This document shows positions 30,891 through 64,000 of a stretch of 64,000 bases of DNA, piece after piece (position 1 is the first letter of the stretch; each line of letters opens with the position of its first letter). The notes beneath the pieces were generated by a model. That model was given only the letters and a program-made list of their open reading frames with translations, was not told the DNA's origin and did no database searches. The stretch is from Utricularia gibba (taxonomy: Eukaryota; Plantae; Magnoliophyta). The position numbers and the translations under genes were made by a program. The stretch covers positions 248,001-312,000 of the forward strand of contig NEEC01000013.1 of the NCBI GenBank assembly GCA_002189035.1, read 5' to 3'.

Positions 30891-30908
30891 TGGCGCCGTT
30901 GCCGGGGA
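30891..30908 (+). other. Primer-binding site complementary to tRNA-Asp
   Basis: TGGCGCCGTTGCCGGGGA, the standard Athila PBS. Confidence 0.92.
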
Positions 30909-33432: not shown

Positions 33433-36400
33433 GTGCTGGACTTCAGTCTTGACAAAGCCATGAAGCATCCTGATCAGATTAGTGAGATACATGCGATCTC
33501 CACATGTGAAACTGATACTGATCACTATACGATGATCCATGAACAAGGGCCCGAATCTTATTTAGATATGGAGATTTTGCAATCTGAAGACTTTCCTTTT
33601 GCTGAACTTGAAGTCTTCAATCATTCAGATGATCCACCCGACGAACCTCATGTGCAGGATGTTTCTTTTCTTAGCTTGGAAACACCTAGCGAGCCGCTAG
33701 TTCCTTCCGTTATTCGAGCACCATCATTAGAGTTAAAGACTTTGCCCGAACATTTGAAATATTTGTTTCTTGGTGATGATGAGACCCTACCTGTTATTGT
33801 TTCTAGTTCACTAACCTTGGAATAGGAGGAGAAGCTTAAGGCTATGCTTCAGGAGCACAAACAAGCAATTGGTTGGACTTTAGTTGACATCAAGGGAATC
33901 AGCCCTTCTATTTGCACTCATAGGATTTACCTAGAGGATGGGACGAAGCCATTTCGACAGCCACAGAGGAGACTGAACCCCCCGATGGTCGAAGTGGTCA
34001 AGAAGGAGATTTTGAAGCTGTTATCCGCAGGTATCCTATCTCTGACAGTGAGTGGGTTAGCCCTGTGCAGGTTGTCCCAAAGAAGACTGGTATCATAGTG
34101 ATGAACAATGAACAAGGGGAACTTATTCCCATGAGAGTGCAGAATGGTTGGAGGATGTGTGTGGACTATCGCAAGCTTAATTCCGCCACCAGGAAAGACC
34201 ACTATCCCCTTCCTTTTATAGACCAAATGCTTGAACGACTTGCAGGGAAAAGCCACTATTGTTGCTTAGATGGATACTCCAGTTTCCACCAAATTCTCGT
34301 GGCTCTTGAAGATCAATCCAAGGTAGTTTTTGTTTTCCCTTTTGGAACTTTTGGCTATCATAGGATGCCATTTGGACTATGCAATGCACCTGCCACTTTC
34401 CAAAGATGCATGGTGAGTATCTTTTCGGAGTATGTGGAAGAGATTATTGAGGTCTGATAAACGGAAATTCCTAATATCGTTGCAATAAAAATAGAAAATC
34501 CGTTATCAAATAAATTTATAATCCCTAATCTACACAAAATACAAATTTAGAAAACTTGTATAGTGGATATCGGGGTCGATTATGAAGAGCTTGTGCTTGC
34601 TAAGTGTTTTAATAAATGCATGATTTCGGATAACAGTAGGTCTGAGTCTAAGCTCGGACTAACAGTGGTAAACAAGTTCAGTAAACAAGGTAGGTAAGCA
34701 ATATCAGGTTTCAATGCTAAAGTGACAGGTGCTGGTTCTAATTTAGAATAATACGATGATGCCTTAAGGATCTGCAGGTGGTGTGGTGCTAAAATGTCTA
34801 AGTTAAATTACCATGTTCCTACACTCACAACTTCAAATCACCTAGGTCTACCCAGGTTATTTGTCATATTTTCGGCTAAGCTAGTCTCCAATATCATCAC
34901 CAACTTTACAATTAGGTCTACCCGCATGCAAAGTGTATAGAACTAGGTCTCCCCGGTTCTACTGGTTCTACCCCGGACTAACACCTACTGCGCCCGCCTT
35001 GATTTGTTGGTCTACCTCTAAACCAAGCTTCTTAGTTGTGAAGTTACTTGTTCCCCTCCTTAGGTCTACCCATGGAATGATAGAAACAAGAACTAAGAAA
35101 CAATAATGAATTTTACTAAGATTACTAGACCCACATCACCATGCTTCTCCTTAAGACATCCCTAAGGTTTTAGCTACTCATACTTTGAAGGTTAAGCATG
35201 ATAGCATTAACATAAAACAAAAAAATGTCAAGAGCATTGTGAAAGAGTTGCGTGTAGAAACTGAAAACATCAACAAACTAAAGTAAAGCAGTAAGAATTC
35301 AGTTTTCCTTCTGCTATTGTTCCCTGGCCGGAACAATAGCACTGGACTAGGTTTTGATGTTGTTCTTAAGGGTGAAGTCCTTCTTCTCTCATGGTTTGTG
35401 TTCTTCGTGTTGGAGTTGGAGGAGAAGCCCCCTCGGGTGCTCTCCGTGCTCCACCCCCATCTGCCTGCTTGTTCTTTTTGCTCCACTTCCCGCTTTCTCT
35501 TCTTTTCGAAATTAATATCTTCCCTCATTTACTCCCACGCACTGTTCCTGACACCAGCACTGTTCTCGGCCTGAACTTGCAGACTGCAAGCGGCAGAACA
35601 GTGCCCTTTGACTCCTGCAGCTTGGTGACTTGCACGAAATCCAAATTTCTTCCTTGACTTTCGGGTTGCTGCTAGACTCCAAAATCGGGTTAGACATGGG
35701 GTGGGCTAAATCAAAGGATTTAGCCCACTAATACACCAAAAATCATATTTTCCCTAATCAAATAAAAATACTAAAAATTATAAAATTAACGTTTAAACAT
35801 AATTAAAAATTTATGATTTTTCATATCTTAAAACATGAAAATTTGTGTGTTATCAAGGTCTTTATGGATGATTTCACTGTTTATGGCAATAGTTCTAATG
35901 AATGCTTAGGAAACTTATCTTTGATTTTGAAAAGATGTGTTGTGACTAACCTTGTGCTTAACTATGAGAAGTGCCATTTTATGGTTGAGCAAGACATCAT
36001 TTTGGGACATGTAGTTTCCAAGAAAGGGATTGAAGTGGACAAAGCAAAGGTTGAGGTAATCCAAAAGCTACCTTACCCTACTTGTGTTCGAGACATTCGC
36101 TCCTTTCTTGGTCATGCGGGATTCTATAGAAGGTTTATCCAAGATTTTTCAAAAATTGCATCCCCCTTATGTTTCTTGTTACACAAAGATGTTGATTTCA
36201 TTTTTGATGAAAATTTTCGGTTAGCTTTTGACACTTTGAAGGAAAAACTTGTTTCGGCCCCTATCATTCAGGCACCTAACTGGAATTTGCCTTTTGAGCT
36301 AATGTGTGACGCTAGTGATGTAGCATTAGGAGCAGTCCTCGGACAGAAGTTGGAGAAGGCATCACATGTGATCCACTATGCCTCAAAGTGTCTGGATGAT

Positions 36401-37950
36401 GCACAGCGGAATTACACTACAACAGAGAAGGAGCTTTTGGTCATCATTTTTGCATTGGAAAAATTCTGACCCTACTTGCTCGGAGCCAAGATCATTGTTT
36501 ACTCTGATCATGCAGCATTGAGGTATCTCCTCAACAAAAAGGATTCAAAACCTCGTCTTATCAGATGGATCCTATTACTCCAGGAGTTTGACATAGAAAT
36601 CCAAGATAAGAAGGGATGCGAGAATTTGGTAGCAGATCATCTTAGCCGCATCACCTCTGGAGAAGAATCCAGCCCATTGGCGACAACTTCCCTGATGAGC
36701 ACTTATTCATGATCCATGATGGAAGTCCCTTGTACGCAGACAATGTGAATTTTCTTGTAACAGGACATTTTCTAGAGGACTTCCAGCCTCATCAAAAGGA
36801 GAAGTTGCGGAGTGACAATATGCACTACACTTGGGACGACCCATACCTGTGGAAGATTGGGCCTGATCAAATCCTTCGTCGGTGTATCCCTCAAGGTGAA
36901 GTGAATTCAATTCTTACTCATTGCCATGAACTACCTTGTGGGGGTCATTTTGGTCCAAAGGTCACAGTTAATAAGGTATTGGAAGCTGGCTTCTATTGGC
37001 CTACTCTCTTCCGAGACGCATACCTTCATTGCAAGGCATGCCCTAATTGCCAAAGAGGTGGAGGAATAGGTTTCAGGGACCATATGCCACTTCAGCCCAT
37101 CGTGATGTGCGAAATTTTCGATGCTTGGGGTATTGACTTCATGGGACCATTCCCTTCATCAAAGGGAAAGATTTATATCCTTCTTGCTGTTGATTACGTC
37201 TCCAAGTGGGTTGAAGCCATGGCATGTGAGAAAGATGACGCAAGGACTGTAAGCTATTCCTTGACTTCTTACATTTTCCCTAGGTTTGGTTATCCTAAGA
37301 TTCTCATTTCCGATAGAGGTACCCACTTCGTGAACCATGTCATAAGGGCCATGCTAACAAAATTTGGTGTTCATCATCGTCTTTCTACAGCTAGGCATCC
37401 TCAGACTAATGGGTAGGCTGAAAACTCAAATCAAGAGATCAAATGCATCCTAGAACGAACAGTGAATCTGACTAGAAGAGACTGGAGTCTCAGGCTGAAT
37501 GATGCGTTATGGGCCTACCGCATAGCTTACAAAAATCCCATTGGAATGTCTCCCTTTCACATGATCTATGGAAAGTCTTGCCACCTTCCAGTAGAGATTC
37601 ATCACAAAGCGTACTGGGCCATCAAAGCATGCAACATGATTAGTGACCAAGCAGGAGAAAAGAGACTGCTTGATCTGAACGAATTAGAGGAAATCCGCTT
37701 GAATGCCTACTCCAATCACTTGATCTACAAGGAGAAGGTAAAACACTTCCATGACATTAAGTTGCATGAAAAGAAATTTCGAGTTGGTCATAAAGTTCTT
37801 TTATATAATACCACTTTGAAATTTTTCCTGGAAAACAGAGATCTAAATGGCAAGGACCTTATGAAGTTTCACATGTTTTCCCTTATGGTGTTGTTGTTAT
37901 CCGTTCTTATGAGACAGGGAAATGTTTCAAGGTCAATGGCCATAGGTTGA
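33433..37950 (+). pseudogene. pol: pol (RT, RNase H, integrase), split by a solo LTR insertion
   Basis: WRMCVDYRKLN, MPFGLCNAPATFQRCM, IEV / FMDDF on either side of the insertion, MCDASD...YTTTEKELL, H-H-C-C zinc finger, WGIDFMGPFP, ISDRGTHF, HPQTNG. Confidence 0.95.
34455..35855 (-). mobile_element. Solo LTR, Athila-type subfamily D, inserted antisense into RT
   Basis: TGATAAAC...TTATCA termini; perfect TSD AGGTC (34450-34454 / 35856-35860); reverse complement of 22083-23495. Confidence 0.97.
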
Positions 37951-38635
37951 AACCATATTATGAGAACTTCCAGCCGCAAAAAACTTGCTGTTTGCTCTTA
38001 ATCGAGGATCATCAGTAGTGTACCAAGTCGGTCAACGACTTGAAATTGGCGCTGCGCGGGAGGAAACCCGTGAGTTAATTTTCTCTTTCTTCTTTTACTT
38101 TTGTCTGACGTTGAAGGTTCCGCAAGATTCTGTTGGGATTACACAATATCCCACACATCATTACCGAGAGAAATTGAATATTTTGCTTTCCTTTCCCCCC
38201 ATGATTATCCTCCGTGGGACCTTCTCTCACCATAACTACCTATTTCCCCATTCACACCACTACTTCTACCACTTTCCCCACTTTTCCGTAAGACACTTCC
38301 ACCACTTCTACAAATTTCCAGTTTACTTTCTTCCTCACCTTGTGATCCATCGTAACCAACAGCCATGAAGGGAACCCCTCTGCTTCATCCTTCGTACCCC
38401 TATTAGGAAACCCCGCACAGCTAGGCAACGCAAGGCCGTCATTGAAGGTCCATCACAGAGGAACCGACAGCATTCTGCTTCACCCTCACCTAGACCTCAC
38501 AAACGCCAGTCTGTGCCTCCACCAGAAACTTCATCTTGGGAGATTTCTTCACTGTTTTCCCTAGTTCCTTTAGCCGTACTCCCTCCTATTTTGTACCTTC
38601 CATGGAAAGAATAGGATTCTTCGGCAGCCTAGGAA

Positions 38636-39556
38636 ATGCTAGCTGCAACCCCGGAGAAAGAAGACACACCCGAACTTGTTGCAGATGAGACACCGGAGCA
38701 AGACCCAGTTGCAACCCAGGCTCATACCGACATCTCCGACGAAGATTTCCGACTGGACGACTTGGAGGAAGCAGAAAAAGAAATTGAAATGGAAGAGGCA
38801 TCCAGCCCACCTGCTGCTGAACACAGATGTTCATCCCATGAGGAAGGGGAAGGTGAGGATGATAATATTGATTCTGAAGTGGACTTTTGGATTGCAGAAA
38901 TGCAGGGAGCCGCTAACGAAGGACCACCACTAACGTTCCAAGACGGGGAGCAAGCCATCAATGCTGGTCAAACTAGCAGGCAGCGTGGAAAAGGACAACG
39001 CGGACGACAGAAATTCTGGCGAGATCGTTTGTTGGAGTCTCCTGCCTGGACTCAACTCCGGGATGCTGTCAGGTTTCCCAACAAGAAATCTCAGGCCCTT
39101 TTTAATGCTTTAACTAGTCGCCGCATCCTGTTTTCTTTTCGTTTACATGCTCCTACGTTAGCTCATTTGAATTTGATGCAGGATATTAATCGTATGTTTG
39201 AGTTTTCACCTGAATGTCGTCGTTTTTCAGACATTGATCTTCCTGTTTTTCCAAAATTGGTCTTTGAATTTTATGCTACATTTGCTTTTGATGATGTGGA
39301 AGGGAACCCCATTGCAGAACCTCTAATTTCTTTTCGGTTGGATGGGAAAGACTTTGAGTTTTCTGTTAATGATTTTAATGTTGCTCTTGGTTTCGTGTCT
39401 AAAATTGAACTTACTTCTGCTCGTTATTTGCAATCTTGCTGTGATTATCCCCCATCATTCGATGTGCATAGTGCTTATGGTTCCATGTCTGTGTGTGAAC
39501 CACTCTTTCTTAGTTCCAAACTCAAGGCCCATCACTTGAGGGCCCTGCGCTGTTAG
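38636..39556 (+). CDS. Athila env-like/extra ORF, C-terminally truncated
   Basis: Lies 3' of integrase. Acidic N-terminus, then LVFEFYATF...ISFRLDGKDFEFSVNDFNVALG, typical of the Athila extra ORF. Ends at a junction with unrelated sequence at about 39545. Confidence 0.75.
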   Translation: MLAATPEKEDTPELVADETPEQDPVATQAHTDISDEDFRLDDLEEAEKEIEMEEASSPPAAEHRCSSHEEGEGEDDNIDSEVDFWIAEMQGAANEGPPLTFQDGEQAINAGQTSRQRGKGQRGRQKFWRDRLLESPAWTQLRDAVRFPNKKSQALFNALTSRRILFSFRLHAPTLAHLNLMQDINRMFEFSPECRRFSDIDLPVFPKLVFEFYATFAFDDVEGNPIAEPLISFRLDGKDFEFSVNDFNVALGFVSKIELTSARYLQSCCDYPPSFDVHSAYGSMSVCEPLFLSSKLKAHHLRALRC

Positions 39557-39959
39557 TTTTGAACAGGTACCTCGGAGGATGCTATGCTGCGCTGTTAGTT
39601 TTGAACATGTATCTTTGAAATTGCATGGATCTTGCGTGAACTATGGTATGCTGACTTTGTTAGTTTGTGATCAAACATCGATGGCGGTGGCACTGCATGT
39701 TGTAACATCCGGTGCCGTCACTGGATTTAAAACCCTGTGTCCGAATGTGGTGCTTCGTAATATGCAACACAAACGAGGTGCTAGTCCGTCACTACTCGAT
39801 AGCACCGCAATGATTGTGGCGGTTTTTGTAGAACTGCCTTTGCGGAAGAAAGCTCCGCGCTTGTTTATACGTGGTGCTACGACAAACGACGTCAGAACAC
39901 TGTGTACCCTATGCAGTGCTCGTGCCAGTTACCTGTAGTCATCCTACGCCCACATTTTC
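39342..39959 (+). repeat. Direct repeat of 28165-28753
   Basis: Same env-fragment/X junction; contains a 21-bp internal direct repeat CTGCGCTGTTAGTTTTGAACA at 39545-39565 and 39587-39607. Confidence 0.92.
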
Positions 39960-40892: not shown

Positions 40893-41280
40893 TGTTGGAA
40901 TAATGTGTATTGGAGAAGGGAAGCTCTATCCCACATTGCAAGTTGAACATGTGTTCAACTAGTTTATAAGGGATAGCAACCCAATACTTTTGATGGGCTT
41001 GAGAGTAAGCTAGGCCTCGCGCGCATGCAGGGTCTTAATTTGTTAGATCGGGTTGGGCTCCCGGAGGGCCCCGAGACCCAGAAATGGCTACACGCAGGGG
41101 GGTACAAAACTTATATATGCATAACATATCTGGTTGCTGTGCCGCCACTACAAACAAATCTTGTCCATCTGGTCCTCGTCAATTTCTCGATACTACAAAA
41201 ATTGAGCCCTTTGATGGAAAGAATTTTCGGCGCTGGAAAGATCGCATCTTTGAGTTGCTAGATATGCAGAATCAATTACC
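40893..41280 (+). mobile_element. Ty1/copia fragment: short LTR plus the N-terminal piece of gag
   Basis: TGTTGGAA...ATAACA (40893-41126) with cccacattg and TATAA-like motifs typical of copia LTRs, followed by DTTKIEPFDGKNFRRWKDRIFELLDM (copia gag N-terminus). Truncated at about 41275. Confidence 0.7.
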
Positions 41281-42297
41281 CTAAACCCCAAATACGGTCA
41301 CTGTATATTCAATTACGGTGACCATCCGTAAATCTACTATTTTTAGCAGAATCACATCAAATTTTATTTCACGCGCCTTCCACTTATCACATCTACAGTA
41401 TCTTTGACTGAAAAAGTATCATTCGGTTCCCGATAAAACAGACTGACAATTTTACTGAATTTATTAAATTGGGTTTTAAAAAACAAATTAATTACTTTAA
41501 AAATTTAATTACACCATTCTTCTCTTCCTTCTTCAACCACCATATCAATCTTCACATTTCAAAGGTTTTTTCACATAGAACAAGTATGCTTTATGTGTAA
41601 TTTTTGTTTATATTTTTTATATCTTAATGGTCATAGCATTGGGTTCTCTATTTCACGAGGATATGAAAGCATACAATATTTGTTTTATCTGAGCTGCGGA
41701 TGAAAACCGATATATCGGATTTGGTCGATCTGAGGGTCACAGAAGGTATCGGAGACATCGTCCCTTTTCGTGTTTTGTTCGGTTTGGCCGAGTGAAGTTA
41801 AAAATAGACAGGGACTTTTTACGTGGAAACCACCGTAAGGTTGAAAATACCACGGAGCTGTCGGACCTCGCCGAGGAGAATTTCACTAGACGTAGGTGAC
41901 GATGAGAATGATACAAATTGGGGAATTCTCCAGGTCCAAAAAATCCCGCTTTTCTTCAATCTGTCTCCTCTTTGTAGAGGAGACCGGTCTAGCCAAATCC
42001 CCTTTTTCAGGTGTCGGTCGCTTTTCATACTTGTACTATGACCTTACTTTTCTGATGCTCGCCACCCACTCTGCTATGGTTCGGCCGCTTTTAAGATTGC
42101 GGCGTACGGCCGCTGTTGTCAGATCTCTGACATATATCGGCCTGTCGGCAGGCGCTGTTTCCTCATCCGCTAGAAACTGCACATTTTCAGGTACCAGTCC
42201 ACGTTTTCTCCTCCCATCCGCTACCTTTGGGCCTTGTTGGAACCACCGCCCCTTCTTTTTCTTCCTGGTGTTAGACCTTCCCTTCTGATTTCTGACA

Positions 42298-44516
42298 ATG
42301 GTTAGGAGGTCTAGTGAATTGGATATTCCCTCTCTCTGCATTGAGTACTCGATTCCCGAGGAATACATAGTTTGTCACGCTCGGGACACCGAAGTCCCTT
42401 GGGGACTGGTGTGGATCCCCTTCCTCCTTTTAGCTTGCCAATTCCCTAGCCTACTTCGAAAGCGATTTACGATTTCCACTTCATCCTTTGATAGTCCATT
42501 TCCTTCATACCTTCGCGGTACCGCTCTATTGTCTTGCCCCGAATTCTATCTTCTGTTTCGCTACCTTCTTAGTCTACTCGGCTGGCATGGATCTGGCTAT
42601 GTCCTTAGTAGATTTCCTTCACCTTTTTAAAATTGTTGTTCGCAAGGCGAAGACCCCCATGGAAGGTCGATTTCACTTCCAGTTCTACCGATTTGAGGAT
42701 AATCCTCATTTCGTTGTGAAAGCCCCTGATACCCACCATGATTGGTGGTCTTCTTTCGTCTTGGTGGCACCCCTTTGGGTTTTCGGTGGAACTTCCCGAT
42801 TAACCCCCAACTCCCTTCCGAGTGAAGCTTTTTGAGGTATATCGGTCCTCGTCCGAATCTCGCGAAGCCTTATACAAAAAGCTTAGTCAGGGTTCCTTCC
42901 CATTCGAAACTCGTTCCTTGACGTTTTCGGGGGAGTCTCTCAAAAGGTTGGGTCTTATCGGTCGTAGTCGCGATCCCCATTGGCCCGATATTGTACCCTC
43001 TAGGAATACTGTTCTACAGACTCTACCTCCTTCTCCTCCAAATCCCCCCTCCATTCTTATCCGACTCCAATTTCACAATCTTCCCAACCCGTGGCCCCAA
43101 GAAAAAGAAAAGGGTTAAGGCGGTTGTCTATAAACCCTCGAAAAAGCAAAGAGGTAGTTAGGCTCTATTTTCCCGTGTTTCAAACTCGGCACGGGGTCTT
43201 ATATTTTCTCCGTTCTTTGTCTTGCGGCTAAAGATATGGCTCGAAGAAATGCCTTGGAAGACTCGGTGATGGCCTGCTTTTCTGTGGAGATGCATAGGAT
43301 GCAAGAGTCGGAAGCGACTCCTCCTATACAGGTTTATCGGGCATTTATCGGTTGCTATAGGTTTCCGACTCTGACCTTCAATTTTTCTTCCAGGTTAGTC
43401 CTCCTGAAGTCCAACCAAATGTTGCTGACCCCGCTGTTGGGGAGGGTCAAACAACTGAAGTTTCCGAGGTTCGTGATCCAACTCCCCATCTGACAGTCGG
43501 AAAGGGGAAAGAAAAAATCCCGCCTTCGCCCGATCTTAACAAAGCCCCGGCTTGCGGCGCAGGGCTCCTGTCTGCGGGCACTTCCACATCGGCTCCCTGG
43601 ATGAAGCACAAAGAAGCCCCGCTCCGATAGAGGTGGAAGACGATCCAACTCTTCCTCCGTCTTCGGTTCCTACCGAACTAAGGAGGATGCTAGATGAAGT
43701 TGTGCCGAGTCTTTTGGACGTTGAACCGGAAGTTATATTGACAGGATTTAGCAGGTATGATCTTTTGCCTTCTTAGTGTCATTCATAACTCATTTCCAAC
43801 TTAGAAGTTTTTCGTCAGGCCTTGACTTTTGGATGGGGGCTGGCCAAGAAAGTTGGGTCTCAACCCGAGGAGGTTGTTTGGCTTTAGAAGCAGGTGGAAG
43901 CTCAAGATGCCAAGATGAAGTTAATGGCTGAGAAAGGAAGCTCGCTGAGGAGCATTCTCGGTAAGCGCGATCGACGCGAGGAAGAACTGCATAATATAAT
44001 TGAAGAGATGGGAAAAGCGGTTGACAACGTCAAATCGGAGAGAGAGGGCTTTCGAGTAAATTTTGAGGAAACGGAAGCCGAATCAAACGAGACCAAAGAT
44101 CGCATCGTGACTCTAGTGGCCAAATTACTAAATCGAGCGTCTCGGCGAGACCTTTTGGAGAACTTCGTCAACTCAGCATGCTTCTCGGAGTTATCTAATA
44201 TCTATGCAGGGGACCTGATCAGTTTGCTTCTCTATCAGCAAGACGTCAGATCAGCCGAGAATTCGGATTATCCATTATGGATCCACGCTTCGACAAGGTC
44301 AATCCTCTAACAAAGGATGAGAATATGCTCGATGTTATCACGAATGCTCACCCTACAACTGAACTCCGATTCGAGGCTGATCGGGCACACTTGATTACAC
44401 TCATCCGAGCTAGAATCGGGCGAGAGAACGAGGCCAAGCTGCAGGCGAGGCTTCGGGGGCATGTTGGCCCCTCGGTCGGTCCTCGCAGCAATCCCCCTCC
44501 TCCTCTTGAAGTTTAG
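42298..44516 (+). pseudogene. Tat/Retand antisense extra ORF (PF04195 'putative gypsy type transposon'-like domain plus coiled coil), decayed, probably spliced
   Basis: LCIEYSIPEEY..., HFLHTFAVPLYCLAPNSIFCFATFLV..., HHDWWSSFVLVAP; GT-AG intron-like segment at about 43755-43818; coiled-coil E/K/R-rich C-terminal ORF at 43894-44310. Confidence 0.75.
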
Positions 44517-45159
44517 TTTCCTTGTCTCTTCTTTTGCTAAACTAATGTTTTTATCCCCGATTCTGGGGTTTTTAGGAACTTTGAGATCCCGGTTAGGGAT
44601 TCTTCTTTCTGATTTACTTATCTTTGGCTTCTACTGTTTTCGCCTTAACTGATATTTACGAGTTGCACGATTCGCCAATCCCCCGACCGGGCTCTTCGCT
44701 CAAGTACTCTCTCATAATCACCCGAATTCTTTTAAGGACATGCTCGGGAGCCGCCCAGACTTGAGTCATCTCTCTACTTCGAATATGTCTTCACCTGGTC
44801 AGATTCGCGCTTTCAAGGCATGGCCGGATCGGTCTCGGGCATGTCTGCCATTTCAAGATTCGGCAGCATGCTCTTTATTTAGAGCTTTTTCAGTGCTTTA
44901 TTCGAAAAGCATTTAGGGAGGACTGGTACCCAAGTCGTGTTAGGGCTTTGGAGGTCTTATATTTCGAGGAAAGCCCTGATTCGGCTTGTTGTGCCCATGA
45001 CGAGTTTAGACCTGGGGGGCTTACCAGGGCCCGCATGACCCGGAAGTCGTGTATCTTTTGTCATCCATTTAGTGGGATTTTTTATTTGCCATGGTTCTTT
45101 CTTATGCGAGCTGAATTGCTGCGAGGGAAGTAGGTGGGGGATCCCTCTTGGGTTGAATA

Positions 45160-45905
45160 ACTTCCTAAATCCGGGCGGGCCCTCTTCTGGCCGAGATCTC
45201 CTTGTTTTAAACATGGGCGGATCTACTTTGAGCGCTTTCGCCGTCTCGAGATACAGCAATAAGGTTTGAACCTAAAGGCTTTTTTGAGACTGACGCAGAC
45301 GGTTGCAAGAACCGGTGCCCCAGTTGTACTCGGGCTTACCCTTACCGCTGGGGTGTAGACTTTGGAGATCACATGTTTGGGGGGGGGGGGTTCACCTAGG
45401 TTTTTGTGACCCGAGGGGTAAATGTCTTTTTGCAAACCCTTTGGTTGGGCCTTTCAGTTTTGATTTGCCTTAGTACTTCCTTACACGAGCTGAACCGCTG
45501 CTAGGGAAGTAGACCAAGACCCCTCATGGGTTCAGTGACTTCCCCAATCCGGATGGCCCTCTTTTGGCCGAAACCCCAGTGTTTTGAGCATGGGCGGATT
45601 TGCTTTGGGCGCTCTCGCCATCTCGAGATTTCAGCAGTAAGGTTAGTACTTAAGGACTTTTTCGGGGCTTACGTGTATGGTTGCAGGAACCGGGGCCCGG
45701 GTTATACCAGGGCTTATCCTTATTACTGGGGCCTGGGTTTAAGAGGCTATAAGTATATATCGAGGGGATCCCATGTTGATCTGTTGTGCCCAACGGGGTC
45801 GCTGATTTAGAAGGTTTGCCTGGGCTTACTTAACTTGGCCAGGGCTTATGGTTTAGATCTAGAGAGTTTGCCTGGGCTTATGTGGCTCGGCCAGGGCTTG
45901 TGATC
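45160..45905. repeat. Internal tandem repeats of the Tat element
   Basis: Units at about 45160-45350 and 45540-45735 align (period about 375-380 bp). Two ~52-bp units beginning GTTTGCCTGGGCTTA lie at 45813-45905. Confidence 0.75.
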
Positions 45906-46012
45906 CTGCTAACCCATCTCTGCTTTGGGGGAATTTATAACCATTCGGGTGCTTTGGCAAAGAAAATACCGAGTCCAGAAAGAACCTGTGATAGGGATGG
46001 GTATTGAGCCGA

Positions 46013-46351
46013 CTGGGTGCAGAATTTCCTTAAATGTGTTGCGTTCTAGAATCTTAGGAGTCCCATGCCATCGAGCTATTCTAGCCGATACGCTCCTTTT
46101 CCGATTGCCCTTGGAGTCCGATAAGGGCCTTCCCAGTTGCGATCTAACTTTCCCACGTGTCTCTATGGTTGGGTGCTCCGGAGAACCAAGTCTCCTTCCG
46201 AGAATTCCTTTAAGGATATGGACCGATTGTAGCTCCTTTCTGCTCTTCTCTGACAAGCCCCTAGTCGATTATAAATATTTTGTCGTTTTTCTTCCAGCAA
46301 TCCCAACTCCAATTTTCTTAGGTCAGCGTTCTTCCTATTTGTTCCCGATTC
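46013..46351 (-). pseudogene. Integrase C-terminal (GPY module) remnant of the Tat element
   Basis: LRKLELGLLEEKR...RSYNR...FSEGDLVLR...GKLDRNWEGPYR...GAYRLE*LDG...NATHLRKF; fixes the element on the minus strand. Confidence 0.85.
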
Positions 46352-46678
46352 ACAGATGGCTTGGTTACGCCTCTTTTCTTCGCAACATCTCCTCCTCGGT
46401 TTCAGATTCGGTCTCCTTGTCCAGGGATTGCTTTTCCGCTTGTCGTACGATTTTGGGTGTCCCCTCCTGTGCGTTGGAGTTCAGACCGAGGGTGCCCTAA
46501 AGTCGGGGAGAATTTCTGTCAAAAGGGGTCTTTAGCTGCTCCATGCTGTTGACCATAAGGCCGGGGCTTTGCATGCTGGTGCTTCCTTCGTAGACAGAAT
46601 TCGTGGCCGTTTTATTTTTTGCCTTGGTTGATGTTTGGTGAGCAACCTCTATGGATTTCTCGAGTGGGGCCATAGAAA

Positions 46679-46697
46679 AGCCCCACGGTGGGCGCCA
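46679..46697 (-). other. Primer-binding site complementary to tRNA-Lys(CUU)
   Basis: The plus strand reads AGCCCCACGGTGGGCGCCA, matching the 3' end of plant tRNA-Lys(CUU), 7 nt from the LTR at 46705. Confidence 0.88.
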
Positions 46698-47177
46698 AAA
46701 ATGTTGTAGATGAAAACCGGTATACCGGATTTGGCCGATCTGAGGGTCACGGAAGGTATCGGAGACATCGTCCCTTTTCGTGGTTTGTTCGGTTTGGCCG
46801 AGTGAAGTGAAAAATAGACAGGGAATTTTTACGTGGAAACCACCGTAAGATGGAAAATACCACGGAGCTGTTGGAGTTCGCCGGGGAGAATTTCACTAGA
46901 CGGAGGTGTCGATGAGAATGATACAAATTGGGGAATTCTCCAGGTCCAAAAAATCCCGCTTTTCTTCAATTTGTCGCCTCTTTGTAGAGGAGACCGGTCT
47001 AGCCAAATCCCCCCTTTTTAAGGTGTCGGTCACTTTTCGTACTTGTACTGTGACCTTACTTTTCTGATGCTCGCCGTCCACTCTGCTATGGTGTGGCCGC
47101 TTTTAAGACTACACCGTACGGCCGCCGTTGTCATATCTCTAACATATATTGGCCTGTCGGCAGGCGCTGTTTCCTCA

Positions 47178-47199
47178 TAGCCCCCCCCCCCCCCCCCCC
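47178..47199 (-). other. Polypurine tract (G-run plus CTA) abutting the outer side of the right-hand Tat LTR
   Basis: The minus strand reads G(19)CTA|TGAGGAAAC, the usual Tat PPT-LTR junction. Confidence 0.75.
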
Positions 47200-47384
47200 T
47201 TCGGTAGCCTTTTCAGAGGCTTATTATCCTCGACCGATTTATACCCCATCATACAGCCCCTCTGGTTTGCCTGCATTGGCCTTCTCGGGGCAAGTCGGGG
47301 AACCAGAGTCGCAACTATACTGATTTTGAGTTTACCGATTTCCCAGGGGTGAATCTTCAACCCATTTAGTACGACTCCCCAGAG

Positions 47385-49183
47385 ATGAACACATCAGAAA
47401 AGTTGAGACTTCGATTCAATATTCTTGAAGAATATCAATTGTGGGATAAGGAAGAGGATGAAGAGATCGTTGGTGATATTCCAGAACGTGTTGGTCTTAG
47501 GGGTTTTGCTATTAGCACTGAGCACCTTAGATGTGGCTTGCGTGTGCCAGTGGTATCATTTATGTTGCAAGTTTTGACATGCCTTCAAATTTCATTTTCA
47601 CATTTGATTCCTAAGTCAGTGGCATATATATTGGCATGGGTTTACATTGCTTGTGAGGAAAGCATTCCCCTAAAATTACCTATTTTCTTTGATGTCAGCA
47701 TGTGTAGTAGAATAAAAGATTCACCAAATTGTGTGATAAAGGGTAAGTCTACAATTAAATTAGTGAAAGGTCTATGAAGTGGCTATGATAGTTGGTGGAC
47801 AAGTTTTGTATGAGTTTCTCCTCCTGAAGATTTACCAAATGATTTCCCACGCACACCTCCAAATTCTCATCTTATTGGAAAACCACAAGGTATTTTATGT
47901 GTTAAATAATTTTTTATACTATATGCTTTTATGAGAATTGTTCTGATTTTATTGATCTAATTTACTTATGTTTATTGTTAGGTGTTGAGATGTTACCAAG
48001 AGATGTCGTTGATGAATTCCTTGCTTTCTTTAAAGGGCAGACTAGGTCATTGACTACAATCCTACCTCCTATCTTTAGAGTCCAAGGCATGGCCAAGTTT
48101 TGGTGTAGAAATGATGATGATGATGATGTGGATGATCAAAGTAGAAATGAGGCTGATAATTTACACGAAGATGTGGCGGTTGACAATGAAACAAATGATT
48201 TGGCAGCTGAAAATGAGGCGTTGAAGCAACAACTAAAGTGGTATCAATCCAGATGGCCTTCTTTCTGCGAATCAAGTAGTCATATTCCAACGGTGCGAAA
48301 ATTAGAAGTATTGGACGTCAATGGCATTTTTGCTCATATTATTTTTCATTCATCATCAACTATCAAAGGGCGTCCCGATAAGTGGATTTATGGGCGAGCA
48401 GGTATATTTAGTATTTCACACATTTGCAACATTTTGATGTTATATTTTCAGTGTTAATTGCTAATTTATTGACTTGACTTTATTGCATGTGTTATATTTT
48501 CAGTGTTTCTAAAACCAAATGCTAGGGAGCTCATGGAATGGTGTATGCAACATTTTGATGTTGCACTATGATCCTCACGTGGAGGGTAACATACAAAATA
48601 TTATATTATCTTTTATATATATATATGTTTTACATGTTATTCTTTTTGTAACAGTGCACAACTAAACCAAGTCATTAACTGAATGTTTGGCGAGAAGATG
48701 TCAAATTTGGCATTCATATGGGATGGAACGAAATGCACCACCACAAACCTTCGAGTCCTCAAGAAGCCAGCAAGTATTGTTTTGTTGAAAGAGTTGCGAA
48801 AAATATGGGAAGATGATGCTTTTCATGGCCGGTATACGCATGGTAACACCTTGTTGGTAGATAATTCACCATACAAGTTTACAACAAATCCAGTAATAAT
48901 TTTAGTTAAAAATTTCATAAGTTAAATTTCATTTTTTTTAGTTTAAATTATACTCTAATGGTTCTCAAATAAGTTGACAATGTCATATTTCCATACTCCT
49001 ACAAGCACACAGATCATAAAAAAGATTCATCTTTTATGGAAGGGGGTGAGATGAAGATTTTTCTTGAAGGACTTATAGATGCATCTGATGTACCATCCTT
49101 TGTGCATGATTTTTCGTATTGGTCAAGCCCCAATGAATGAAGACCATCCGGACTGGGAGTATTATAAAGCATTAGTAGAGTAA
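47385..49183 (+). pseudogene. Chimeric PF04195-like / FCP1(NIF)-like HAD phosphatase gene, copy 2 (complete architecture)
   Basis: Exons 47385-47889, 47982-48401, 48504-48585, 48655-48892 and about 48973-49183. Motifs: MNTSEKLRLRF, EHLRCGLRVP, ISFSHLIPKS, YDSWWTSFV; acidic run; AENEALKQQLKWYQSRWP; LEVLDVNGIF, VFLKPNARELMEWCMQHFDVAL*SSR, FIWDGTKCT, LLKELRKIW, NTLLVDNSPYK, IFPYSY, GQAPM...DWEYY*. TGA stops at 47775, 47811, 48569 and 48680; a +1 T near 49110; last acceptor degenerate. Confidence 0.9.
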
Positions 49184-49240
49184 TTCTCATTTTCTATTTC
49201 ATTATGCATATTAGGAGCACTTTTGCTTTATTGTTATCTA

Positions 49241-49990
49241 GTAACTGTAACTGATGATTATGGTGATCGGCAGAAATAGGTAATCATCATTTTTCTTGTT
49301 AGAGTACTATAAGTATATTCTCTGGTAATTATAATTGATGATTACGATGATCGGCAGAAATAGATAATCATCGTTTTGCTTAATAGAGTATTATAAACAT
49401 TTTCTCTAGTAACTGTAATTAATGATTACGGTGATCCGTAGAAACAGATTATCATTTCCTTATATTACTTTCAATTCTGGTAACTGTAATCGGTAATTAC
49501 GGTAACCGTAAAATTTAGAGATACAAACTATTACTCGAGTAATTCTTATTTTCTCTTTTATGCTCGTTCGGAACACTTTTGCTTAATAGACTACTATCAC
49601 CATGTTTTCTAGTCACTGTAATTGATGAATTACTTTTATTTGTGGTAACTATAATTGATGATTACAGTGATCGATAGAAATAAACGAGTATGGTTTTTCT
49701 TATATTACTTTTATTTGTGGTAACTATAATTTATGATTACAGTGATAGATAGAAATATGCAATTATTATTTTGTTTATATTAATTTTATTTCTGATAATT
49801 GTAAGTGATGAATTGTAGTGATTGGAAGAAATATGTAATTATCGTTTTCTTTATATTAGTTTCATTTATAATAATTGTAATTGATGAATTATAGTGATCG
49901 ATATAAATATATAATTGATGTTTTCTTTATATTTTTTTTATTCTAATAATTATAATTAATGAATTATTGTGATCAACATAAATAAAAAAT
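49241..49990. repeat. Degenerate tandem array, about 10 units of 70-85 bp
   Basis: Recurrent GTAACTGTAATTGATGATTACGGTGATCG...AGAAAT motif starting at about 49241, 49325, 49409, 49480, 49612, 49645, 49720, 49795, 49871 and 49945, becoming more AT-eroded distally. Confidence 0.85.
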
Positions 49991-52121: not shown

Positions 52122-54508
52122 ATGGCATCTTCTTCAGCAAATTTTTGGGTTGTGTTGGGTCTTGGGATTGCTGGAATCTTGCTTATGACCAATAAGCTCA
52201 AGAAAGCGGTTAAAGTTGACTTCGGAGCATTTATCCAGAGATTGCACCTATTGCCTCCGCCTCAGCCGGCGCCCCCTAAAGCTTCGCATCCACTGACTGG
52301 CCTCTCTTTCGCGGTTTCTGATGTGTAGGAATTTACTTGTCTGCTATTTGCGGATGCTGATTTTCCTAGGCTCCTATCCCTATGACGTGCGTGTATTGAA
52401 TTTTTGTTATCTGTGTTGCATCATGGCGATAATTGTGGTATTTTTCAGCTTTGATATTGAAGGCTTTGTGACTGGGTTTGGCAATCCAGAGTGGTTCAGG
52501 ACTAAGGATCCTTCTGCACGGACATGTCCCATTGTCATTACTCTTGTTGATGGTGGTGCCACTTGTATGGGGAAAACAGTGGTGGATGATATGGCAATGA
52601 GGTATTCTTGCTGGAAAATCATGTGTTTTTTCATAAAGCGTTGAAACTTTCCTTCTTAATTGTTTTCGTTACCCTTTTTCTTTTATCCAGTATTTCTGGA
52701 GAAAACAAACATTATCGAACACGAACTAATTCAGCCTCTCCTTCACGCGTACCAGGGGGACCGTCAAGTGGTGCTGCAGTAGCTGTTGCTGCTAAGCTCG
52801 CGGATTTCTCTTTAGGTAAGTTTCTGCTTCTACTTTTTTTGATTACCGGTTATTGCTGCCTCTCAAATGGAATGAATCAAATCACTACAAAATTACTTCG
52901 ATTCATTGTTGAAAATGGAATGTATACAAGGTCTCTTATAAGTGGAAAATTACTTTGATTCATGTTCATCAATCTTCTCGCTCTCGCTCTCTCTGTAGTC
53001 GGGCTGAATGCTGTTTACTCCACGTTTTCTCAAGGAAAAAAAATATTCTTTTAGGATGCTAGTTTCCTGAAATGTGATATAACAGGATGATGCCATACTT
53101 GCAATCCCTACTTGTGATCCTCCACCAAAGCTTGGTGCGAAAGAAATCCACTCAGAGGAATACCTAATTCAAACTTCTACCTTTTCATGCATAGCTAGTT
53201 TATCTGGCTGTTGTCAGGTTGAGGCTTCTCTTCCTTTTTCATGAGTGTTGCAGCTGTCACATATGCTCAGTTTTTTTGTGTTCGTTGTAGTTTGCAATAC
53301 CAGTTGGTATAAATGATAAACGCCCAGTTTCGTTGTCTCTCCTTGCTAAATATGGTAGTGATAGGTTTCTTCTGGATACTCTGCAAAATCTGTATGCATC
53401 TTTAGCTGAGCAGATGCAAAAGGCTTCAAAGCCCAAAACAATATATGAAAGTGTCTCGCGAGATGAATCAGCTGAGATTGCAAAAGAACAGGTATATCAT
53501 GAAATCAGCATTTTCATTTAATGGGCTAGCTGCAAACTTCCATCTTTTCGTTTAAGCTGTAATCCTGGCATTGTACCCTCAAGCCAACTTTGTGATATAC
53601 GCAAATTTAATGTGAACCCTTTTGAAATGCCAAAATCATACTTTTTAACCAGGTTACATGTTTGTCTGTTAGACATGTAGCTAAATATCTTATGAAATAT
53701 GCTTTCTGAAGGAGTAATGACCTTGCTAATAGGTAATGAGTGGAGCAAAGTGTGGATTTTAGGCGAGAAGATTAATGTGCAAATGTTTTGTTTACTTTTC
53801 AACGTTTCCTTATAACGTAGATTGAGCAGTGCTTATTTTTAGTATTTTAGACATCCTTCTGATGCTTGATGTAAATCGTGGGAAACTAATGTGTTTTGCC
53901 GTCAAAAAAAAAACAGGGCAACCAAGCATTCAAGGATAAGCAATGGCAGAGAGCTATTGGGTTTTACAGTGAAGCTATCAAGCTCAACTACAACAATGCG
54001 ACATTCTACAGCAACCGTGCTGCTGCTTATCTAGAGATAGGAAGGTATATGTACTGGCCATATGTTATTGAATTTAGTTTTCTTGATTGCAGCTATGCCT
54101 CATGACTCATTCATTGTCTCTAGTTATGGCCAAGCTGAAGCAGATTGTACTCAAGCCATTCACCTTGATAAGAAGGTGCTTAGCTCATCTCCTTGGGTTT
54201 CCCATGTTTCTACTAAATTTCTCCTGGAAATTAACAGGGCTTAACATCATTTTCCATGTTGGGGCTTGCAGAGGATAAAGGCATATTTGAGAAGGGCAAC
54301 TGCTCGGGAGATGCTGGGTTACTACAGAGAAGCTATGGAGGGTTCGTGTATTACTATCATTACTTGCATCATTTCTGGTCATTCCTAAACTTATGCTTGA
54401 CACGGCTACCCTTATTCTTTTACAGACTTCAGATACGCACTTGTTCTCGAACCGAATAACAAAAGAGCAGCACAGGCTGTCGATCGTCTCAGGAAGTTGT
54501 TCCAATAG
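52122..54508 (+). pseudogene. TOC64: TOC64-like (chloroplast outer envelope amidase-TPR) gene lacking the central amidase exons
   Basis: Exons 52122-52324, 52449-52601, 52691-52815, 53086-53217, 53291-53491, 53917-54044, 54124-54175, 54272-54341 and 54426-54508. They encode MASSSANFWVVLGLGIAG, LPPPQPAPPKA, GKTVVDD, SGENKHY, DDAILAIP, GCCQ and three TPRs ending DFRYALVLEPNNKRA...LRKLFQ*. The GIDT...SLLK region is absent, and exon 3 (phase 1) does not join the next exon (phase 0) in frame. Confidence 0.85.
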
Positions 54509-59199: not shown

Positions 59200-60559
59200 A
59201 TGCTCAATTTCATCCTCCTCATTCTTCTCTTCTCCTCCTCCTACCTTCAGGCGCTTCCCGACCTCGCCGCCGTTCAAACCCAGACACTCCGCCGTCCGCC
59301 TCCGGAGATCACGATCCCTGCCTTCCCGGAACAATCCTATGCCTCCACCTGTCCACTGAACCTTCCCAGCGACCTCTTCCACAGCGTCAAATCAGCCTGC
59401 GTCTCACATTCCTTCTCCTCCGACCACCGCTCCCGCTGCTGCCCTGTGCTCGCTGCCTGGCTCTACTCCGGCTACTCCACCACCGCACTGCGCGTGTCCC
59501 CGGCCGCAGCGAAAACCCATCAACCGGCACCGTACGAAATGCCCGTACTCCCCGATGATTCAGAGACCTGCGTGGATACCCTGGAGAGGGCGTTGGGTAA
59601 CAGGGGATACAGTTGCGGCGGCCGAACTCTACCTGCGACGTCGTTTATTGCTACTGTGGGATCAGACTGCACCCCTTCAGTTGCCCCGAGGCGTTCCGGG
59701 TTGACTCCCATGGGGAATTGGAGCCAGGGGAATCCGTACGAAAGCTGGAAACTGCTTGCTTCGGCAGCGGCGGTGTCTCCGTCTGCTCCAAGTGCCTCCA
59801 CGCCCTGTATTCTGTGAGCAATTGCGCTTTGCCGCTTGTTTTCCCTTTTTATGATTACAACATTCTTTTGCTCATTCCAAGGCAACTCCTTTTCTGCAAA
59901 AGTGGCTGGCCATTTCCACTCCACTCAGCACAGCACACAACTTTCGCTTTTTATTCATCTTCCGCTTACTCACTCCATTAGATTAACCCAATGAATGTTT
60001 GAGTTCAATTCTCACTCTTAAAGAAAATAGGGCAGATTCCATTCTGGTTTCAAAATCGAGAATCTGATTTTGACTCTTAAAATTGAGCGTATAAGATCGA
60101 ATGGATCCTAATCAATCTGGAATCTGGTTAAATTGATTGATTGATGGTTGGTTTGAAAGAGCGAATATGACGGTGTTGTCCACTTGGTTTTTATACTGAG
60201 GGAAAGAGTATTGTGTTGGTGCAGCTGAACGAGGAGAAAAGCAGGAGAAACGACAACAGAACGAGCAAGATACACAACCGGGACTGCGAGCTAATGGGAT
60301 TAACATGGCTCCTGAGCAAGAACAGATCTGCATACATTCACACCGCCACCGCAGTGTTGAGACAGATGATGAACGGCAATGGCACTTCCAAGGGCTGCAG
60401 TTTGAGCAGCGAGGGATGCCCCTCGCCGTCGATTCTTCGGAAATCAGCGGCCAGGCTCGGCCCTCATCCACGCTGCTGCCTTGTTCCGTCTTACGGCTGA
60501 TCTCTCTGTTGTGCTTTTGTTGCATCTTCCTTAGTCACTTGAGCAGTGCAGTGCAGTGA
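59200..60559 (+). CDS. GPI-anchored SPARK-domain protein (At4g28100-like), with two apparent -1 frameshifts
   Basis: Signal peptide; IPAFPEQS, CPLNLP, RSRCCPVLAAWLY, PDDSETCVD, TCDVVYCYCGIRLHP, CSKCL; intron 59814-60224; DCELMGLTWLL, MPLAVDSSEI and a hydrophobic C-terminal tail. Frames shift at G runs 59603-59606 and 60413-60415. Confidence 0.9.
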
Positions 60560-61720: not shown

Positions 61721-64000
61721 TGATAACATATAATTTTCACTATTTTAAACTTAGAAAAGAAATAGTATTATATTATAGAATTATGATTTTATCAAGTATT
61801 TTTGTATTTTTTTCATTTAATAGTGTCATTTCGCATTTTACTCTATATTGGGAATAAATCCTGGATTTAATCCCAGTCTTTGTTTTAATCATTCTTATTT
61901 AACAATTTAGCATGCTTTTAGCATTCCTAATCCCAAGAAACTGAAAGTGCATAGTGAATATGGAATGAAATGGTAAGAAAAGGGAGGAAATATAAGCACA
62001 AAATCTAAAAAGAGAAAAAAAAAAGATTTTAGATAAGATAGAGAAAAGAGAAAAATATCTCTACTTTGAACAACATGCAAGGGATTGGCAAGAAGTGTTC
62101 TTGAAGAAAAAAAATTGCAGACCACAAAGAAGATAAAAGAGTAAGAATTAAGTTGATCTTTTGAGAACTTATTCTATTCAGGAACACTACTCTTAATTTA
62201 GAGTAGATTGCAAATTTTTTAGGATTTCGCATGAAATTATTTACATTCCTGTTGCTATTTATATTCTTTCTTCAATCAAATTGAGATTAGAACATGTTAT
62301 GGATGATGTTTTATGTACTAATCCTATTTTTCTTTATTATGAGTAACTAAACATCAAGTGGTGCTGTTGCATGTTGTTTTCTCAATAAATTTTAAATATA
62401 TAAAATGTAGAACACAAAAGAGCGTAGTATGAGTATCGATCTCAGAGAGTTGAGTTTTGCGAAAAGTATTTTGTAAAAAACTTTCACAAATTGTCACGGA
62501 TTTGTAAAAGGGGGTTTTTGGAATGTATAAATAAAAGTTACAACCTAAGTGATGAACTTTGACTACGGTACACAGTTTTTGAGAATGAGATTTCGCTTCT
62601 TTTATCTATCCTCACCTCAGTTTTTATTGATTCCTTCTGAATAGCTCGTTATAGAAGCAAGGAATAGCCTACTCTCCCTTACACTCTAATTAATAAGGAG
62701 GCATGGAAATAGCTTCAAGTAATTCTCCCTTGCACGATTAAGAAGACAAGAGGATTGCCGTCGATTGCCATCAAAACCGAATTGTGCACATGTGCCCAGC
62801 TATTGCCAATGACCAGTGGCAAGCACGAGGTCACTATCTATCCATTGTCGCGGTATCTCGACCACAAACAATTCACTACTTCCCTCGATCCAATAGGGTT
62901 GAAGTTGATACTCTTCACCTTGCTCTTCATCAAGACATATGAGGAGTGGCTTGCTACTCATGGACCGTGACTAAGAATCGTTATAGAAAAACTGCAACAA
63001 GATGCATTGAAATATGCAAAATCTGGAGTGAATTCAGCGAAGAACCAAGTTTAGTGCTCAAGACTTGAAAGGAAACTTCACCTACTCGTAGAAACTAAAA
63101 GAGTTTAGCCACAAAGGGCCATGAAAACAGGGACGAAAATGAAGGCTAAGTGTTCTTCCTCTCTTGGAGGAGAGGAAGAACTCAAAAGTTCTAAGTATAA
63201 AGACAAGTGTGAAAATGTTCAAAAGTCCCTAAAATAAGTGATCCAAGTTGATTTTATATTCACTCCCCACATGTATTAACTTCTTTTTGTCCTCTTCCCA
63301 TCATTCTTTCTGTCTTGGGTGCACCACCAGCTTTACTTTACGTGCAAGTTAGTGCCCAATCATTACTGCAGACTCTGACATGCCGTAAATCAAGGGCCTT
63401 GACTAGCGTTGGTCTTTCATTCACAATTGTTCCAAGTCATGTGCAAGCACGAAAAGTGAGAGTCTGATCTCTTGCAATACTCTACGATTGCCTCCTGATA
63501 TATCTTGGTCAAAGTGCATGAAAAAGATAGAGAAAATATATACAAAATAGGAAAATAGAATTTTTCTAAAAAAATCAATTACTTATCAATATAATTCCTA
63601 ATTGGGCAACTTAACACTAGATTAATACATAATAATACTTAATAATAAACTAGAAAATGACATTTAACAGGTGACTTCAAAGAAGATAAGTATGTTTATT
63701 TTTCATTAAAGCATACTTATCATATAATCACACTATTTACTTAACATATAGATCTAAGAGGAGAAGGTAGTGATATTCATCTTTAAAAATCCTAATTATA
63801 GTTAGACCAAAGATTAGGAGAAAACAAGAATTTAGATAAACTTAAACTTTTTTTGTTAGATGAATGATTTTTAGTTGGAATAGGGTAAAAATAGTAATAA
63901 ACATATTGTCCCTAAAAGTTCCAAACCATCATCTTATTTTATTTTAGATAAATATATGATTGTATTCGTTTATTATTTTACTGTATTTTATCATCAAATT
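61721..64000 (+). mobile_element. LTR of Athila-type subfamily C, interrupted by a subfamily B solo LTR and running off the window edge
   Basis: Starts TGATAACAT. Segments 62100-62364 and 63750-63850 align with 25620-25860 and 25940-26040 (e.g. TAGACCAAAGATTAGG.GAAAACAAGA). Confidence 0.7.
62365..63669 (-). mobile_element. Solo LTR, Athila-type subfamily B
   Basis: The minus strand starts TGTTAAATGTCATTTTCTAG and matches 9797-10890. Its 3' end aligns with subfamily A ends. TSD GGTGC / GGTGA (4/5). Confidence 0.85.

Follow-up and report, generated by a model that had tools for sequence, protein, structure and literature searches.

The window analysed here, a stretch of 64,000 nucleotides from Utricularia gibba (contig NEEC01000013.1), is plant nuclear DNA that is A+T-rich and repeat-rich. 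A five-exon pseudogene, termed copy 1, lies on its forward strand between a Retand-like LTR element and a tandem array. Its spliced frame joins a TRP28 domain, known from retrotransposon accessory genes, to a probable phosphatase-like domain of the HAD superfamily. Two relatives, copies 2 and 3, are located in the same window. The features of copy 1 are the following.

47385-49183, plus strand: copy 1, five-exon pseudogene whose four introns are all GT-AG
47385-47889, plus strand: exon 1, TRP28 (Transposase_28) domain followed by a Y-D-S-W-W-T-S-F-V motif (PF04195 match and translation)
47890-47981, plus strand: intron 1, GT-AG, phase 1, splitting a Gly codon; its equivalent in copy 2 is 27532-27608
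47982-48401, plus strand: exon 2, 140 codons without a stop in translation; homologous to 27608-28116 of copy 2
48402-48503, plus strand: intron 2, GT-AG in the sequence
48504-48585, plus strand: exon 3, helix and then HAD motif II (S-S); matches copies 2 and 3
48586-48654, plus strand: intron 3, GT-AG in the sequence
48655-48892, plus strand: exon 4, HAD motif III (LKELRK) and motif IV (LLVDNSP); NIF-like by Pfam (below the cut-off) and by the protein atlas
48893-48973, plus strand: intron 4, GT-AG in the sequence
48974-49183, plus strand: exon 5, translated as NVIFPYSYK... up to the TAA at 49181, with the IFP strand

In exon 2 a TRP28-type tail is followed by an acidic linker rich in D and E, by the short helix AEN..L...WY..RWP and by LDVNG, which is HAD motif I. 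Both halves of the fusion meet within this single exon and the fusion frame is thus independent of splice prediction. The protein of an undamaged gene would be composed, from its amino to its carboxyl terminus, of TRP28 (PF04195) with the WW..SFV motif, the acidic linker, the short helix and a HAD domain of the FCP1/SCP type (NIF). The gene model of a preliminary description of this DNA, a spliced frame at 47385-49183 fusing a TRP28-type domain, an acidic linker, a helix and HAD motifs, is confirmed. Copy 1 is interrupted by in-frame TGA codons at 47775 and 47811 in exon 1, at 48569 in exon 3, ahead of motif II, and at 48680 in exon 4. Its frame is also broken near 48974-48978 and at the T-run at 49111-49115.

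Copies 2 and 3 were found by tblastn with pieces of copy 1; exon 4 of copy 3 was matched after removal of an inserted LTR.

27035-28168, plus strand: copy 2
18789-21048, minus strand: copy 3
19105-20460, plus strand: solo LTR within exon 4 of copy 3, with TG...CA ends and a perfect 5-bp target duplication (TGTAT)

Copy 2 is composed of exon 1 (27035-27531), intron 1 (27532-27608) and contiguous exons 2 and 3 (27609-28168). In tblastn, exon 1 of copy 1 matches it with E = 2.5e-30 and exon 2 with E = 8.5e-12, and homology reaches the start of exon 3, whose counterpart is 28126-28167. The position and phase of intron 1, with its split Gly codon, are common to copies 1 and 2. Intron 2 is absent from copy 2, the sequence being unbroken across 28100-28167. 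What copy 2 retains is TRP28, the linker and the HAD start; most of the HAD domain is absent. Its end at ~28168 coincides with the beginning (28161) of DNA related to the 3' interior of the Ty3/gypsy element of the window; this repeat, 28161-28753, matches 39338-39959 in self-comparison. The lesions of copy 2 are two frameshifts and four stops (TGA 27459, TAG 27856, TGA 27967 and TAA 28009).

In copy 3 only the helix and HAD part is detectable. It includes the C-terminal part of exon 2 (21048-20857), exon 3 (20782 to ~20702), exon 4 in two parts (~20545-20466 and 19104 to ~19040) separated by the LTR, and exon 5 (18962-18789). The tblastn counterparts of copy 1 exons 3 and 5 are 20779-20705 (E = 4.7e-4) and 18953-18822 (E = 2.9e-9), respectively. 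Exon 4 becomes colinear with that of copy 1 once the solo LTR is removed in silico, and introns 2 and 3 are conserved between the two copies. Upstream of copy 3 no TRP28 was detected, the best match covering 8 residues with E = 1.2. The stops of copy 3 include a TGA at 20716 in exon 3. The solo LTR belongs to a 1.36-kb family that self-comparison reveals also at 3286-4637 and 29531-30884. The last of these is the 5' LTR of a Ty3/gypsy element coding for protease, reverse transcriptase, RNase H and integrase, with a primer binding site of the TGGCGCC type.

The preliminary description had the same architecture and intron positions recurring in three copies. This stands in part: copies 1 and 2 share exons 1-2 and intron 1, while copies 1 and 3 share introns 2-3 and exons 3-5. 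The whole architecture is not seen in a second copy because copy 2 lacks most of the HAD domain, as well as intron 2, and copy 3 has no detectable TRP28. The accompanying statement that all three copies are dead holds, with multiple stops in each, frameshifts in copies 1 and 2 and the LTR insertion in copy 3. Every copy has lost the open reading frame expected of a functional gene to several stops and frameshifts and, judged from sequence, nothing of the fusion copies in the window is functional now. In-frame TGA codons shared between copies were considered as a tolerated stop, an idea rejected as unproven (probability of chance overlap ~0.15 given the Trp codons lost by each copy).

The copies are unalignable as DNA except for two blocks of ~40 nt and their synonymous sites are saturated, in agreement with the claim of an old family of highly diverged proteins. 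In the comparison of copies 1 and 2 the TRP28 part (195 codons) displays 45% amino-acid identity with a pN/pS of 0.49 and saturated pS, and the segment formed by linker, helix and HAD start (109 codons) 38% identity with a pN/pS of 0.63 and a pS of 0.71. The HAD part of copies 1 and 3 (90 codons) is 42% identical with a pN/pS of 0.50, pS being again saturated. The bootstrap upper bounds of pN/pS are below 1 in all three comparisons. In the same aligned blocks pN/pS is 0.53 in frame versus 1.05 and 1.26 in controls shifted by 1-2 bases, and identity at codon positions 1, 2 and 3 is 57, 63 and 37%, respectively, the third position being the least conserved. Saturated synonymous sites combined with a pN/pS of ~0.5 imply that the family diverged as working genes before the copies died. 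By these estimates most of the divergence accrued under purifying selection on a frame that spans both halves of the fusion.

The DNA around copy 1 bears on how such a gene was carried. It includes the following features.

41695-47177, minus strand: non-autonomous Retand/Tat-like element of ~5.5 kb, recognised from its LTR pair and primer binding site
42298-42835, plus strand: antisense TRP28 ORF of this element, 132 bp past LTR A (PF04195, 13.3 bits)
43894-44310, antisense to the element: coiled-coil ORF of the same element
47178-47384, plus strand: gap of 207 bp in the sequence, separating LTR B from the ATG at the start of copy 1
49234-49990, no strand assigned: tandem array of 84- and 75-nt units, immediately following copy 1 (self-comparison)

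LTR A (41695-42165) and LTR B (46705-47177) are ~470 bp each and 92.5% alike. The 18-nt primer binding site TGGCGCCCACCGTGGGGC (minus strand) is positioned just inside LTR B, so that the element is minus-oriented and its TRP28 and coiled-coil ORFs are antisense, near the 3' LTR. Neither gag nor pol was found within 41695-47177. Antisense accessory ORFs are a known trait of Retand/Tat Ty3/gypsy elements (Vicient 2025, PMC11963269; Neumann et al. 2019, PMC6317226), and the earlier assignment of PF04195 ORFs to this class agrees with both papers; the label given beforehand to the ORF at 42298-42835 is likewise correct. TRP28 is the hallmark accessory domain of Retand elements and is predicted to bind DNA; in 97% of the Retand clusters with recent activity its ORFs occupy the region from pol to the 3' LTR in antisense orientation, and tandem arrays are common in that same region (PMC11963269).

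Exon 1 of copy 1 matches PF04195 with 33.4 bits and passes the Pfam gathering score of 26.2 bits, the first of two profile checks proposed in the preliminary description. In the protein atlas it falls among PF04195 clusters with a score of 0.97. The broken pieces give values below the cut-off, 18.3 bits for copy 2 and 13.3 bits for ORF 42488-42832. Copy 1 is indeed homologous to the antisense ORF at 42298-42835, as claimed beforehand, though the match is weak (E = 0.004 around HDWWSSFV). When exon 1 was modelled with AlphaFold without an alignment, the mean pLDDT was 38.8.

Read from left to right, LTR B gives way to a G run, copy 1 starts 207 bp after LTR B and the tandem array comes last. 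The gap between LTR B and the gene opens with ~20 C, which form a polypurine-tract-like G run on the sense strand of the element. LTR A is likewise followed, 132 bp on, by the TRP28 ORF, oriented like copy 1 after LTR B. Copy 1 resembles the Retand/Tat accessory ORFs in that its exon 1 codes for PF04195 and then WW..SFV, as in ORF 42298-42835, and in its placement, with an LTR that turns its polypurine side to the gene, a reading direction away from this LTR and a tandem array beyond the gene. Its surroundings are suggestive of the layout of the Retand region between pol and the 3' LTR, and copy 1 could be the leftover of that region. That it is a remnant of a Retand-like element is a tentative proposal, to which we give somewhat less than an even chance. 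The presence of introns is compatible with such an origin, since an antisense gene can keep them through retrotransposition when the sense RNA of the element does not splice them. Copy 1 differs from the Retand/Tat ORFs, which are read as single ORFs (PMC11963269), in its five exons, its HAD carboxyl terminus and the absence of an adjoining pol.

Several observations speak against a Retand remnant. The sequences that flank LTR A and LTR B on their right cannot be aligned with each other. The Retand-like element is bordered by a near target duplication, TGAGC versus TAGC, which fits its plain insertion beside copy 1. Downstream of copy 1 there are host-gene fragments and no pol; no pol or 5' LTR adjoins any of the copies, copy 1 has no gag beside it either, and copies 2 and 3 are without an LTR of their own. 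Terminal inverted repeats were not found around any copy, nor a transposase in the flanking open segments, although decay or truncation could hide them. Of the notion that the family is transposon-borne, the part that stands is the suggestive context of copy 1; no carrier, terminal inverted repeats or transposase was found for any copy.

These observations leave some room for a host TRP28-NIF gene family, possibly domesticated, whose copies would be old local duplicates decayed among repeats, the LTR elements being later insertions. Three copies within 30 kb with no recognisable carrier, the introns, the promoter-like upstream DNA and the near target duplication, as in a simple insertion, would all suit such a family, and past purifying selection suits a host gene equally well as a transposon gene. 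However, synonymous saturation and the absence of flanking similarity between the copies are odd for local duplicates, three of three copies are dead and, outside the fusion, TRP28 is an accessory domain of retrotransposons (PMC11963269). A host family is therefore considered unlikely. The three copies are probably decayed and anciently diverged members of a transposon-associated accessory-gene family coding for a TRP28–linker–helix–NIF HAD protein.

Relatives of the fusion were sought outside the window. Word-indexed homologue searches with exons 1, 2 and 4 found no relative, a result that is uninformative given their length limits and the divergence of the dead copies. An exhaustive search of representative sequences with exon 2 gave one match, a coiled-coil/acidic stretch in an unrelated protein of 2076 amino acids, which was rejected; exon 2 had no usable match in the protein atlas. 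The scan of metagenome contigs for a conserved DNA block gave nothing, and the single match there to the degenerate pattern YDxWWTSF, which is G+C-rich, is attributed to chance. No RNA run covering the stretch was found and four contig sets of the same species gave no match to it, which is no indication of silence. The literature search found no paper that describes the fusion and none that links PF04195 or the "gypsy type transposon" domain with a phosphatase. Phosphatases and introns are not mentioned in the reviews of Retand and other accessory ORFs. The extra domains reported in Retand antisense ORFs include SMC, Mis12 and topoisomerase 2, with no phosphatase among them (PMC11963269).

It might be proposed that a fragment of a Retand TRP28 ORF came to lie beside a captured fragment of a host NIF gene, in the manner of Pack-MULEs, and that the two never formed one protein, as no intact fusion protein was found by the homologue searches. 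Against this, exon 2 is a single open frame of 140 codons that leads from the TRP28-type tail into HAD motif I, and this junction exon and the phase of intron 1 recur in copy 2 despite saturated synonymous sites. Selection on the frame across both halves, shown by the codon-position identities and the shifted-frame controls and extending to the linker and HAD start (pN/pS 0.63), argues further against chance juxtaposition, and such an assembly of unrelated fragments is improbable. The open exon across the junction and the conserved position and phase of intron 1 support a real protein-coding fusion. As far as sequence comparison can tell, the once-selected fusion family looks real and is present here as fossils only.

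The second profile check, against NIF (PF03031), remained below the cut-off of 21.8 bits on every piece of the copies. The best value, 12.5 bits, was obtained with exon 4 only, which in copy 1 scores 12.1-12.5 bits over profile positions 96-125. This test is unfair to a domain that introns and stops split into five pieces. In the protein atlas, 99 of the 100 best matches of copy 1 exon 4 are NIF (PF03031) clusters, with a score of 0.92 that is above the recognition threshold. PDB searches with three single HAD pieces were blank or non-significant, the only match being that of a HAD-family hydrolase to motif I of copy 2 (E = 0.53, non-significant).

The HAD motifs, assigned by eye against the textbook ones, follow each other in copy 1 as DVNG, S-S after the TGA at 48569, the K in LKELRK, LLVDNSP and IFP. 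Copy 3 features S (motif II), K-L-Q-R (motif III) and LLID (motif IV). Motif I reads LDVNG in copy 1, FDVNG in copy 2 and QDVDV in the decayed copy 3. Copies 1 and 2 do not conform to the catalytic DxDx(T/V), the nucleophile Asp being kept while the second Asp is Asn. The domain has the Asp nucleophile as well as Ser, Lys and Asp in motifs II, III and IV, respectively. Of the full FCP1/NIF domain proposed beforehand, the ordered motifs and the atlas neighbours stand, but Pfam recognition does not (12.5 bits versus 21.8 bits). The carboxyl-terminal domain can be assigned as NIF-like with good, though not full, confidence from these motifs and atlas neighbours. A chance resemblance of motifs in a domain that is not NIF/HAD at all would agree with the Pfam scores of just 12.1-12.5 bits on one piece and with the lack of a significant PDB match, but is very improbable in view of the 99 NIF clusters among the 100 nearest to exon 4, above the recognition threshold, and of four HAD motifs in the right order and spacing that are conserved between copies otherwise ~40% identical.

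The small CTD phosphatases of the FCP1/SCP type (NIF, PF03031) include a large plant group termed SSP (PMC8774115). The fusion resembles them in the order of HAD motifs, in LLVDNSP as motif IV, in the small size of the domain and in combining a weak Pfam match with a clear atlas match. It departs from them in motif I, which is DVNG instead of DxDxT in copies 1 and 2, with loss of the acid/base Asp. To our knowledge no CPL or SSP protein with a TRP28 amino terminus has been described, and none appears in the literature searched.

The best functional analogy is offered by the PMD-PP7 fusions, represented by Arabidopsis MAIL3 and grapevine VvMAIL2.2, and by the MAIN/MAIL1-PP7L module (Nicolau et al. 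2020, PMC7156037). The PMD-PP7/PP7L module acts on gene expression and transposon silencing (PMC7156037). In both cases a domain that stems from retrotransposons, and whose biochemistry is unknown, is combined with one resembling a protein phosphatase. The domains themselves are different, TRP28 instead of PMD and HAD instead of a PPP-type metallophosphatase, and the PMD-PP7 genes are single-copy host genes under selection while the fusion copies in the window are dead. Another parallel is found in the accessory and passenger genes of transposons, such as mudrB of MULE, vanB and vanC of VANDAL and the cargo of Pack-MULEs (PMC6446971). Like these, the fusion is an extra gene, probably in part of host origin, that was probably amplified with mobile elements. 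Unlike them, it has no visible carrier DNA transposon in the window and is a selected two-domain fusion rather than a fragment.

FCP1/SCP domains act on phospho-Ser of the RNA polymerase II (Pol II) CTD and similar substrates. By general HAD chemistry, hydrolysis should be slow or blocked when Asn takes the place of the acid/base residue, and the HAD domain of the fusion may consequently trap its substrate rather than turn it over. In working members of the family the TRP28 part might target the protein to element DNA or chromatin, or to a partner, where the HAD part might bind or slowly dephosphorylate a phospho-Ser/Thr protein, for example the Pol II CTD. The fusion protein would thereby tune transcription or silencing of its carrier element. 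The Pol II CTD and silencing factors as its targets, suggested in the preliminary description, are purely conjectural.

A bolder and rather unlikely extension is that the Retand-type accessory gene, and that of other elements, is a spliced gene of which one large lineage encodes TRP28 joined to a HAD domain that resembles CTD phosphatases and has DxN as its natural active site. Its product would trap the Pol II CTD or a silencing factor, or dephosphorylate it slowly, so that the element would steer its own transcription, and the introns would be kept owing to the antisense position of the gene. A spliced TRP28-HAD accessory gene, if true, would give the long-unexplained TRP28 a testable function. 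A selected fusion of TRP28 to a CTD-phosphatase-like domain suggests that the TRP28 pathway involves phospho-protein signalling at transcription or silencing, and would parallel the PMD-PP7 transposon-silencing module of Arabidopsis (PMC7156037). Spliced exons that lie downstream of a transposon accessory ORF can escape surveys limited to ORFs.

The fossil copies are valuable as evidence on the age, architecture and past selection of the family. The contributions of the window are the junction exon, a comparison of introns, the control with shifted frames and, for one copy, a context of retrotransposon type. The window also contains an intact PPR-DYW gene at 12820-14946, together with an amidase fragment and a SPARK-domain fragment.

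Copies 1 (47385-49183, plus strand) and 2 (27035-28168, plus strand) of the decayed TRP28–FCP1/NIF (HAD) fusion genes are very diverged and share a codon position that reads as an in-frame TGA, placed after WW.SFV, the motif following the TRP28 domain in exon 1 (47811-47813 and 27459-27461, respectively). Copies 1 and 3 (the latter at 18789-21048, minus strand), also very diverged, have a same-codon TGA before HAD motif II, the S-S motif of exon 3 (48569-48571; 20716-20714, minus strand). Both common TGA positions fall within the only blocks conserved among the copies at the DNA level. Copy 1 has four stops, every one of them TGA. Parallel TGG-to-TGA decay suffices to account for the common codons because their chance overlap, estimated from the count of Trp codons lost per copy, is ~0.15. 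Alternatively, they may be an ancestral, tolerated stop.

Copy 2 has no intron (28100-28167) at the site of intron 2 of copies 1 and 3. Either copy 2 lost it, perhaps via cDNA, or the other lineage gained it.

A Tat-clade Ty3/gypsy element lies to the right of copy 2:
29531-39959, element with 5' LTR, PBS and domains from protease to integrase
29531-30884, its 5' LTR
28161-29530, 3' interior of a second copy of the element, directly upstream of the 5' LTR

One LTR is thus common to two Ty3/gypsy elements. The PBS of the 29531-39959 element is TGGCGCCGTTGCC. Its right end is truncated at 39959, and it is broken at 34455-35855 by a 1.4-kb insertion that is an inverted copy of 22083-23495. Other sequences that belong to the 1.36-kb LTR family or resemble it in parts are:
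3286-4637, minus strand, solo LTR with a near target duplication (AAAGG vs AATGG)
9792-10890 and 62561-63676, inverted 1.1-kb pair, 79% identical and 52 kb apart, partly similar to the family (10435-10814 vs 19760-20143)

The non-autonomous Retand-like element (41695-47177, minus strand) has a TRP28 plus coiled-coil layout resembling that of the fusion protein over its N-terminal two thirds. Within it and immediately to its left are found:
43894-44310, same strand as the TRP28 ORF, coiled-coil ORF of 138 aa
45079-45731, internal duplication of about 380 bp
41150-41284, plus strand, short piece of a copia-type gag (FDGKNFRRWK...; 11.8 bits to Retrotran_gag_3), the left neighbour

Host sequences comprise one gene and, right of copy 1, two gene fragments:
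12820-14946, plus strand, PPR gene, intact over 709 codons, carrying an E motif and a DYW deaminase domain
52608-52955, plus strand, amidase-domain exon
59200-59814, plus strand, SPARK-domain ORF

Since these fragments are of host origin, the tandem array (49234-49990) downstream of copy 1 does not lead into a retroelement interior. The PPR-DYW gene, an ordinary gene of the host, is the sole clearly intact gene seen within the window.
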